Below, in pieces: positions 1,193 through 4,100 of a stretch of 64,000 nt of DNA. The stretch's first letter is position 1. Each line of letters begins with the position of its first letter. The position numbers and the translations under genes were made by a program. The notes beneath the pieces were generated by a model, which saw only the letters and a list, made by a program, of their open reading frames with translations, did no database searches and was not told the DNA's origin. The DNA comes from Gracilinanus agilis. Its lineage: Eukaryota. The stretch spans positions 197,557,804 through 197,621,803 of the forward strand of contig NC_058134.1 in assembly GCF_016433145.1 (NCBI RefSeq). Direction: 5' to 3'.

Positions 1193-4100
1193 CTGTGGAG
1201 AGGGGAGAGAGGGGTGACATGTAAAACGAAGGTGCCTCTGCACCCCTGTGCCCACGCTGGGCCTCCCCCCTACCCTGGCCTCTAGAGAACACTCGCCGTT
1301 TCCCCACCATTCCCACCATTCCCGGCCACAACTCACCTTCCCCTGGAGGCAGCATGTAGAGGCACAGACAGACAAAGAGAAAGACATAATTTAACATCTT
1401 TAGGCTTAACATCCTGCAGCCCGAGAACCTTCCTCTCCCAGAACAGACCGAGGGCTGCCAGGACTTGGGACCTGACCCCGGAGTGCTGGGTCCCAGCCCT
1501 CGCCCCTGCCCCCATCCCTTCTCCGAAAGCCACCAATCAGATTTTGCCTGGGAGAAGCCCACTAATGCCGGGTAGGCCAGAGCCTTCCCTCTGAAGCTGC
1601 CACGAGTGTTGCCTTGTAACCCCTCAGGCTGGCAGCACGATCCCCCCAGTGAGCCGACAAAGGTGAGTGTCTAGAACGGAGGAGGGCAGCCCGACGATGT
1701 GGGAGGGGAAGGTCGCTCACCGAGTGAAGCTTTCATCCTGCAAGTTCAGCACGAGGTTGTCGGCCGTGAGATAGATTCTGTTCTGAGATGTGGCGATCTG
1801 AAGCCAAGGCAGGACAGGTAAGCCCCCTGCCCTCGGCCCGGCCCGGCCCCCTTGCGCCCCCCACCCCCCACTTACAGTTTTGGAGATGTTTTGGGCTGCC
1901 CGGATCTTCCGAAGCTTGATGTAGCCGGGGTTCTTGCTCAGAGCTTCCCCGAGGTGGGCAGAGTTAAGGAGCCACAGACACAGACAGGCCTGACCTCACT
2001 GTCCACCCCCCGCTGGGGCTGTCAGATCTAGGGGTTTGCGCTCAACCACAGCCAATGCCTCTGCTTCCATCCTGACCCCACCTGTGGGCCCCTGCTGGGT
2101 AGAGCTGCCGGAGTCTAGAGGCAGCCACTGGAAACCCAGGGGCCTGAGCAATTCTGTGGGTCTGGCTTTACAGCAGGAGTCCAGGCCTCTGGCTCCCTAC
2201 CAAGATTCCAGACCTCTAAGAGTGTAAGCACCCCCCTCCCTGGGAGCCAGGAGCCAGAAGGCACGGAGGTCGCATTCGCCTTGGAGTCATCACCCAGCCA
2301 GCCAGAGGGGAGGAGGTTATCCCTCATTTTCCTATCGAGGGCAAGGATATCATTTTGGCGGCCTCTGCTTCGCCCTCAGCTTGTACAATCTTCTGTCGTT
2401 GCTCTTGCTTGGCCTTTTCCACCAGGAACTGTGCCCTCTGGGCCTCCTGCTGGGCTGTGGGAGTGGGATGCAGACAAGAGGCTCACTGGCCCTTCCTCCC
2501 AAGGCTGAGCTCCCCAGGCCGCCTCTCCCCCATGGCACTCACCTACTTGCTTGGCCTCCACAGCGGCCGTGTACTCTCTGCTGAAGCTCAGCTCTGTGAT
2601 GGCCACGTCGTCCAGAATGAGGCTGAAGTCCTTGGCCCGCTCTGTGAGTTCCCGACGGATCAACAAGGACACCTGGGGGAGGAGGCGAGACAACAGAGAT
2701 CAAAGGCAAGGCTGTTAACCTAAAATCCAGTTCGAGAGCAACTGAAAACCCATCCACTGCTCCTTCCCAAATGTCACTCTGGGTTCCTGCCTTGGTTCTG
2801 ACAGGTCTCTGGTCTCCCTGAGGCCTTGCTGGGGAAGGTGGAGCAGGCTTGTGTCTGGAGCTTCCATTTGTGGCTGTGAGCTGCCCTCCAGACTCCTAAT
2901 CTAGTCGCTGCTCTCCCCACTCCTTCCTACTTCTCCAAAGGGCTCAGAACTTCCCAAGCTACCTCTCTAAAAATGAAGAATCTGCCAACAGCTCTTCCCT
3001 AGCAAACTCCCGCTTATGTGCCAGGAGGCAGGAGCTTCCAAGTTCACTGATGCTGATGGCCTGAAGCAGGCAGAAGTGGAAGGGGTCAGACCTGGGCTCG
3101 CTGGGTGATAAGCTGTGAGGCGTTAAACTTGGCCACGACACTCTTGAGCACCTCATTCACGATAGAGGGCAATACTCGCTCCTCATAGTCCAGCCCTAGG
3201 CGCTGGTACATGCTGGGCAGCTCCAGGGCATTGGGGCGGGACAGCACCCGGAGAGAGATGTTTACCATCTGAAGATCTTGGCAGAAGAACAAGAGAAAGT
3301 GTCAGTCAGGATGGGGAGGCCTCCTCTCCTCAAACAGGTGGCCCCGAGTATCTTCTCTCATGTTCTCCATAGTGTCTAACAATGCTGGGAACATGAGGCA
3401 GGAAATGCGTTCCGGCTTGGCACCAGGTACTTCATAACCACCTGCTGAATCACACTTAACAGCTACCTGATCAAGTAAGAAAGGCAGAGACAGTCCCTCC
3501 TTCCCCTAAATGTACAGGAGACAGAACCCAGACCCGAGTCATTATAGAATGTGTAGACAAGTTCAGCTCTAGGGGCCACATAGGTAGCTACCTACCTAGG
3601 TGCCGAGGGAGCGTAACCCTTAGTGAAATGCAAGTGTCCCTGGTAGTGTGTTGGGAAAACTCATTCCTTCTACATATGCTGAGCATTTGAGACCCAGGTC
3701 TTTCATCCTCTTGAGACTTAGGCAGGAAGTAAGAGGGGTGCACAAATGCTAGGACTGCATACAAGGTTGCTCTGTGGTGCAATGGGGAATCTCAGCAGGC
3801 AGAAGTGGGGAAGGTAACTCCAAGCTGAAGGCTATCTCATAAAAGGCCAACGTTGGCTTGATTAAACTAAATCGATGGAGGGAATGGCTTAAGCAGTTCA
3901 AGTCTGGAAGCAGTAAGCACCTACTATGCATGGAAAATTAATGGAACTTTAGAATCTAGAGAAGATAGGAGCAAAGAGTGGAAGGTGGCATGGAAGAAGG
4001 TAGACAAACTTGGACTCAAGCGCTGGTCCAAATTTAGAAGCTTACTACTCATGACTTTAAGTTCTTGAGTTTCCTTACACATCAAAATGGGATAATACCT

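Follow-up and report, generated by a model that had tools for sequence, protein, structure and literature searches.

A candidate guide element for U5 Gm37 in the box C/D half of SCARNA12

Which RNA directs the 2'-O-methylation of G37 (Gm37) in vertebrate U5 small nuclear RNA (snRNA)? This base opens the invariant U5 loop 1, where exons are held in splicing, and its methylation is among the few internal snRNA ribose methylations without an assigned vertebrate guide. We approach this question from a 64,000-nucleotide (nt) stretch of the genome of the marsupial Gracilinanus agilis (NC_058134.1, positions 197,557,804–197,621,803; hereafter the window), whose minus strand encodes SCARNA12 (U89) in an intron of PHB2; coordinates given without a locus name are window positions on that strand. 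The H/ACA half of this small Cajal body-specific RNA (scaRNA) is established as a guide for pseudouridine 46 (psi46) of U5, while its C/D half has been given no target. We find that the C/D half carries a conserved 8-nt element, AAGGCGAA, exactly complementary to U5 around G37, and sequence comparison inclines us slightly, rather than firmly, to regard it as a real U5 Gm37 methylation guide. What is new is this target assignment; the RNA itself is already known.

Methylation of G37 is documented (PMC8283771, PMC7960923). The guide field for Gm37 is empty in the table of a 2021 review, where Um41, Cm45, psi43, psi46 and psi53 have guides (PMC7960923); SCARNA12 papers, PMC5733568 among them, give psi46 as its sole target, and a RiboMeth-seq preprint of 2026, which assigns guides to other sites in U5 and U2, has none for Gm37. 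These sources bear out the original prediction, made from the letters of the window, which had taken G37 to be methylated and without a guide in standard tables, and U89 to be listed for psi46 only. It had also proposed a literature check: no vertebrate Gm37 guide was found in the literature searched, with Darzacq 2002, Jady & Kiss 2001 and the snoRNA atlas and Xenopus supplements outside its scope, and an earlier mention is possible.

Identity of the RNA and its match to U5

The RNA at 2020–2297 is SCARNA12, a composite box C/D and H/ACA scaRNA. Rfam family RF01294 (snoU89) aligns to it end to end (model positions 1–270 of 270) and scores 168 bits (gathering score 44; E 1.6e-47), and the composite layout is complete, with C and D boxes and a terminal stem enclosing two hairpins that carry H and ACA boxes (Table 1). 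Box C (GUGAUGA), box D (CUGA) and the 5-bp stem GGCUG/CAGCC, as expected of a C/D guide, are all present, and the five stem pairs persist throughout the 8 sequences aligned, apart from a single wobble and a single mismatch. The pseudouridylation pocket for U5 U46 is also present, with both arms pairing to U5 and a spacing of 13 nt to box H. Folding of the whole RNA by minimum free energy is uninformative for a protein-bound scaRNA.

In U5, nt 34–41 read UUCGCCUU and nt 22–27 UCGCAU (PMC9323798 Table 2), and the loop runs C36-Gm37-C38-C39-U40-Um41 (PMC8283771). AAGGCGAA complements nt 41–34 with a Watson-Crick pair at every position, free of mismatches and wobbles. Since the flanking bases C2283/U42 and U2274/U33 do not pair, the duplex is exactly 8 bp, covering positions 2–9 from the candidate D' box GCGA, with a predicted energy of −10.4 kcal/mol. 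C2278, the fifth base upstream of GCGA, stands opposite U5 G37, so that the base facing D'+5 is one known to be 2'-O-methylated. On these points the original prediction proved accurate throughout: its placing of box C, CUCC, the 8-mer, the U and GCGA is correct on a minus-strand reading, the U5 segments that it used match the published sequence, and the pairing with C2278 on G37 was confirmed base by base.

Both strands of the window (128 kb) contain the 8-mer 1 time, against 0.66 expected. The chance of an 8-mer match in register (+5 to one given site) within the 13-nt spacer between box C and D' is about 1e-5 to 1e-4. The spacing is 13–14 nt from box C to D' and 11–15 nt from C' to D; a spacing of ~12 nt suits C/D ribonucleoproteins (RNPs), and the distances seen in these sequences would fit such a particle.

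A second complementarity lies beside the first: UGCGA and AUGCGA also complement U5 nt 22–26 and 22–27, respectively. The original prediction had combined the two into a bipartite pairing of about 13 bp. The complementarity itself is real, but its part in a guide mechanism was rejected, because GCGA cannot be a D' box and be paired to U5 at once, nor does the mechanism require it; if GCGA acts as D', its pairing to U5 is excluded, and we keep the bipartite pairing only within a rival explanation considered below.

Table 1. Features of SCARNA12 and of its host intron in the window
Feature	Position	Strand	Basis or remark
SCARNA12 (U89)	2020–2297	−	Rfam RF01294
Terminal stem, 5' strand GGCUG	2295–2299	−	complements CAGCC 2021–2017
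Box C GUGAUGA	2287–2293	−	fits RUGAUGA; UGAUGA invariant in alignment A1
Variable spacer CUCC, box C to antisense element	2283–2286	−	differs between species
Candidate antisense element AAGGCGAA	2275–2282	−	complement of U5 nt 41–34; C2278 opposite G37
Invariant U, position 1 upstream of D'	2274	−	opposite U5 U33, unpaired; alignments
Candidate D' box GCGA	2270–2273	−	GA invariant; 13 nt past box C, directly before H/ACA domain
psi46 pocket, 5' arm AAUCUU	2202–2207	−	pairs U5 A48–U53
psi46 pocket, 3' arm GUAAAG	2166–2171	−	pairs U5 U40–C45; 13 nt before box H
Box H ACAGAA	2152–2157	−	fits ANANNA; between the two hairpins
Box ACA	2083–2085	−	kept as ACAG in A1
AGGAUGG, earlier C' proposal	2067–2073	−	not a conserved element; aligned stretch differs or is deleted elsewhere
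Better C' candidate UGAGCG, inside invariant UGAGCGCAA	2039–2044	−	9-nt invariant block in A1
Spacer CAAACCCCUAGAU upstream of box D	2026–2038	−	13 nt; CAACCUUGGAU in eutherians; no convincing target
Box D CUGA	2022–2025	−	invariant, within GAUCUGACAG
Terminal stem, 3' strand CAGCC	2017–2021	−	partner of GGCUG
PHB2 host intron, U12-type AT-AC	1954–2350	−	ATATCCTTG ... TCCTTAAC (1970–1963) ... CCCAC, then exon; read from sequence

Conservation of the antisense element

Orthologues were fetched from contigs carrying close relatives of the PHB2 exon open reading frame (ORF), searched exon by exon, which gave six different eutherian-like sequences and one non-mammal-like sequence (L001). Alignment A1 holds 8 therian sequences including the window, L001 was compared in the A1/A2 set, and contig L037 was left out of every comparison. 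Full-length snoU89 was recognized by Rfam in L002/L004, L005/L007, L011, L016 and L017, and a pattern scan of metagenome data returned 30 loci, with SCARNA12 in L024 only. A spurious ORF across the scaRNA, used as a protein query for orthologues, gave 0 matches; the loci P0011, P0017, P0019 and P0033 were set aside, their contigs stopping before the scaRNA intron or not being vertebrate-like.

Across A1 the window is 63–68% identical overall to the eutherian-like sequences, and no invariant block anywhere in the RNA is longer than AAGGCGAAUGCGA, the 13 nt comprising the 8-mer, the U and GCGA; the next-longest are GAUCUGACAG (10 nt) and UGAGCGCAA (9 nt). With 46% of columns invariant, ~0.01 runs of 13 would be expected anywhere in the RNA. 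AAGGCGAA is unchanged in all 7 other orthologues of A1 and A2, L001 among them, and the onset of conservation coincides exactly with the onset of U5 complementarity: the 4–5 nt between box C and the 8-mer vary (CUCC, GGCU, CACU, GACU, GACUU, AUUU). The original prediction had staked itself on the constancy of both the 8-mer and GCGA. The 8-mer held in the eutherian-like sequences, the window and L001; GCGA held in the aligned therian sequences and its GA in all the sequences compared, with GUGA in L001.

By the same comparison, the other guide elements of SCARNA12 are less constrained than the 13-mer. For the element upstream of box D, the window has CCCCUAGAU, eutherians have CCUUGGAU, and L001 differs again; unlike the 5' element, it thus diverged between the marsupial and the eutherians. 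In L005, L011 and L024 the psi46 pocket is mismatched in its two arms (GAGAGCUU and AUGAGG in place of GAAAUCUU and GUAAAG), and L005 and L024 also have an imperfect box H, with the 13-mer intact. These three loci (L005:4544–4788, L011:3544–3786 and L024:849–1093) form one eutherian group with a deletion of 10–13 nt after box ACA and unchanged C/D elements.

The most diverged orthologue came from a plain search for the 8-mer, which gave a single match in L001, in the next (GT-AG) PHB2 intron. In L001 and in L013 the PHB2 exon corresponding to the upstream one ends ...EATAAKM and is followed by the AT-AC intron, which holds no snoRNA. The match at L001:3861–4183 lies in a SCARNA12-like RNA of ~320 nt enclosed by a 10-bp terminal stem, CCCAGUAGCCA/UGGCACUGGG. 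Its 5' part reads box C AUGAUGA, AUUU, AAGGCGAA, U and GUGA; the remainder is an H/ACA-like body that shares GCCAGAUCCACA with mammals, followed by UGAGCAC, a spacer and CUGA. Against snoU89 this RNA scores only 14.7 bits (E 0.044) and is therefore missed at the Rfam gathering score. Its position in the next intron indicates that the scaRNA changed introns within its host gene. Despite near-total divergence and another host intron, L001 preserves the 8-mer and the U in unchanged register to an xxGA box, and this D'-like box, GUGA, is one step nearer the CUGA consensus, with guide and register unaltered.

Within L001:4100–4170 there are apparently two similar C'-spacer-D modules, AUGAGCG...AAGGUCUUUCUGA and AUGAGCAC...AAGGUCUGA; the terminal stem comes after the second module but not after the first.

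Guide mechanism and competing explanations

In the mechanism that we propose, AAGGCGAA would pair with U5 U34–U41, taking up the last two pairs of stem Ic and six bases at the start of loop 1. GCGA would serve as a degenerate D' box and pair with a degenerate C' box, UGAGCG, across the base of the H/ACA insert, through tandem G.A/A.G pairs followed by G-C and C-G in a presumed kink-loop (k-loop) fold. Fibrillarin recruited to this C'/D' unit would then methylate the base opposite D'+5, that is G37, and Gm37 would depend on SCARNA12.

The C' box is the part in which this mechanism departs from the original prediction, which had placed it in AGGAUGG at 2073–2067. That sequence does occur there, but eutherians otherwise have a CAAAGUAAG-like stretch in its place, with a deletion in L005, L011 and L024, and we discarded it for want of conservation. 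UGAGCG (2044–2039) is the better C' candidate: the aligned therian sequences show no variation in it, L001 and organism B (a related species) have UGAGCA, it retains the UGA on which tandem G.A pairing to the GA of GCGA would depend, and its positions 4 and 5 (G, C) complement positions 2 and 1 (C, G) of GCGA. The candidate D' box, GCGA in therians and GUGA in L001, matches CUGA at 2–3 of 4 positions. At 2035–2054, where the window reads UGAGCGCAAA, organism B has UGAGCACAA, longer by ~3 bases (CAA), and it carries the same G-to-A change as L001; its contigs cover window 1903–2038 only.

Several points weigh against a guide function. C/D guide duplexes usually comprise 10–21 bp, and the antisense duplex, just 8 bp at −10.4 kcal/mol, falls under that range; both internal boxes are degenerate, D' agreeing with CUGA in 2 of 4 positions and C' with UGAUGA in 3 of 6. 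The 5' sequence CUAAGG of eutherians complements the invariant CCUUGG before box D and UGCG complements CGCA, giving an internal duplex of the C/D domain predicted at −16 to −21 kcal/mol; the same pairing is drawn in the Rfam consensus structure. Such a duplex, if formed as modelled, would bury AAGG, half of the guide, and would lock the D'/C' bases into a plain helix. No comparable RNA was found in the stretches of PHB2 covered at two fish-like loci (L009 and L010). Gm37 is older than vertebrates and than this RNA appears to be, which implies that some lineages use another guide, and mammals may have another one too. For more than 20 years no study has assigned Gm37 guiding to SCARNA12, nor does a paper on crosslinking-and-immunoprecipitation (CLIP) chimeras report such a SCARNA12–U5 Gm37 assignment.

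The internal duplex suggests a purely structural account, in which the 13-mer would be one strand of a rod-like C/D closing stem (CUAAGG/CCUUGG, UGCG/CGCA, CUC/GAG) serving, as part of the C/D motif, stability or RNP assembly, and its match to U5 would be coincidental. This account agrees with the Rfam consensus structure, in which the bases assigned here to D' and C' form a plain helix (UGCG/CGCA and CUC/GAG), and it draws on the strength of the predicted eutherian duplex. The step from mammals (5' UGCGA/3' GAGCGCA) to L001 (5' UGUGA/3' GAGCAC), a C-G to U-A change, would also suit it; that change is, however, equally compatible with the k-loop register (U.G, A-U) and so decides nothing. Both strands are invariant in eutherians, so that covariation speaks neither for nor against the helix, and the 8 therian sequences show no compensatory change. 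In the marsupial, changes in the 3' strand break 2 of the 6 CUAAGG/CCUUGG pairs while the 5' strand stays the same, and the predicted duplex falls to −11.5 kcal/mol; the internal helix alone thus fails to account for the constancy of the 5' strand. CGAA, moreover, is unpaired in the Rfam structure and yet invariant, and an 8-mer coincidence in register at an orphan 2'-O-methylated site, in a loop already targeted by the same RNA, has odds of ~1e-4 or less. We regard the structural account as unlikely.

A different possibility is that the element binds U5 without methylating it: the 8-mer, possibly as a two-part 13-mer (AAGGCGAA on nt 34–41 and UGCGA on nt 22–26), would tether or unfold the U5 5' stem-loop and thereby assist, or set the order of, further modifications in loop 1, for example psi46 guided by SCARNA12 itself. 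The second complementarity is present, and a G.U pair retains it in L001; nearby modifications of the U5 loop are documented to interfere with one another and to follow an order (PMC5733568), and extra pairing that aids C/D guides is an established idea. The psi46 pocket, however, requires U40 and U41, both of which the 8-mer would occupy, and adjacent bases of the scaRNA would need to reach across the two ends of an intact 8-bp stem Ic. An extra match of 5–6 nt is statistically weak, and binding of this kind leaves the D'+5 register and the C/D-type spacings unexplained; we consider it decidedly unlikely. It is very unlikely, in our judgement, that the element serves another target (a different snRNA, rRNA, mRNA or telomerase RNA) or a conserved protein-binding site: 8-mers can match other cellular RNAs, but the substrates of scaRNAs are snRNAs in Cajal bodies, SCARNA12 already aims its H/ACA half at the same U5 loop, and no other orphan site is known to fit.

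Given that CCUUGG before box D complements the start of the proposed D' guide (CUAAGG) in eutherians (L002, L016 and L017), a single C/D RNA could there pair its own guide positions with each other, a possibility largely lost in the marsupial (2026–2033 and 2279–2284).

Related guide RNAs and the PHB2 intron

Known scaRNAs offer both precedent and contrast for a Gm37 guide in SCARNA12. U85/SCARNA10, which guides U5 Cm45 and psi46, shares with SCARNA12 the composite C/D–H/ACA architecture and Rfam clan CL00082, and both its activities fall on U5 loop 1, as they would in SCARNA12; the two lie on the same human chromosome arm, and a chicken catalogue groups them as 'U85/U89' (PMC2653536). U85, however, methylates through an element of ~11 bp on the box D side with canonical boxes, whereas SCARNA12 would use 8 bp on the side of a degenerate D' to reach G37, and its box D element, unlike that of U85, has no recognisable target. 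The sequence evidence partly supports SCARNA12 as a dual guide like U85, with a D'-type 8-nt antisense aimed at U5 G37. The original prediction of a dual methylation and pseudouridylation guide survives to the same extent: guide, register and candidate D' box are compatible with all the comparative tests run, and the C' assignment was wrong.

The layout is shared by U87/U88 (SCARNA5/6), C/D–H/ACA scaRNAs whose 5' (D') antisense methylates U5 Um41, four bases from G37 (PMC2653536), and we count this likeness in favour of a Gm37 guide. Their antisense elements are 11–12 bp long, with recognised boxes, and have been tested experimentally (PMC5733568), whereas the candidate element of SCARNA12 is shorter and predicted from sequence. 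By target, SCARNA12 can be likened to Drosophila mgU5-38 (scaRNA:MeU5-G38), the dedicated fly guide for Gm38, which is equivalent to human Gm37; mgU5-38 consists of a box C/D scaRNA on its own, and vertebrates have no reported orthologue of it. A further comparison is with SCARNA12/U89 as currently annotated: the same gene, credited with guiding psi46 only and with no target for its C/D half.

A candidate guide makes the gap at Gm37 testable, as SCARNA12-low cell lines and a rescue construct exist (PMC12995542). If the assignment is true, it would provide a role for the 'orphan' C/D half of SCARNA12, which has been studied in leukaemia, bladder and colorectal cancer purely as a psi46 guide, and it would mean that an 8-bp antisense with degenerate C'/D' boxes can guide, with bearing on searches for orphan guides. 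A broader proposal, to which we give a little less than an even chance, is that the C/D half is the missing amniote Gm37 guide, that selection has mainly preserved this activity rather than redundant psi46 guiding, and that the phenotypes of SCARNA12-low cancers, at present attributed to psi46 loss, may partly reflect loss of Gm37.

The host gene was identified as PHB2 from the flanking exons, which translate to PHB2 peptides: the upstream exon ends ...AEAAKM at 2351 and the downstream exon begins at 1953. Eutherian-like loci carry snoU89 at the same PHB2 position as the window, and an RNA contig joins from the downstream PHB2 exon onward. The upstream exon ends ...AAKM in the window and in non-mammal-like loci and ...AARM in eutherian-like loci. 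Against the Rfam model the window scores below the eutherian-like loci, and in the loop of its 5' hairpin, at the CAB-box position, it has AGAG where the Rfam consensus has UGAG. PHB2 is already catalogued among minor-intron genes in the literature, and the intron hosting SCARNA12 in the window is a textbook U12-type intron, with the start ATATCCTTG, the branch site TCCTTAAC and an AC end 10 nt past the branch A. The AT-AC intron is kept in L001 and L013, and the fish-like locus L010 has GT-AG at this place.

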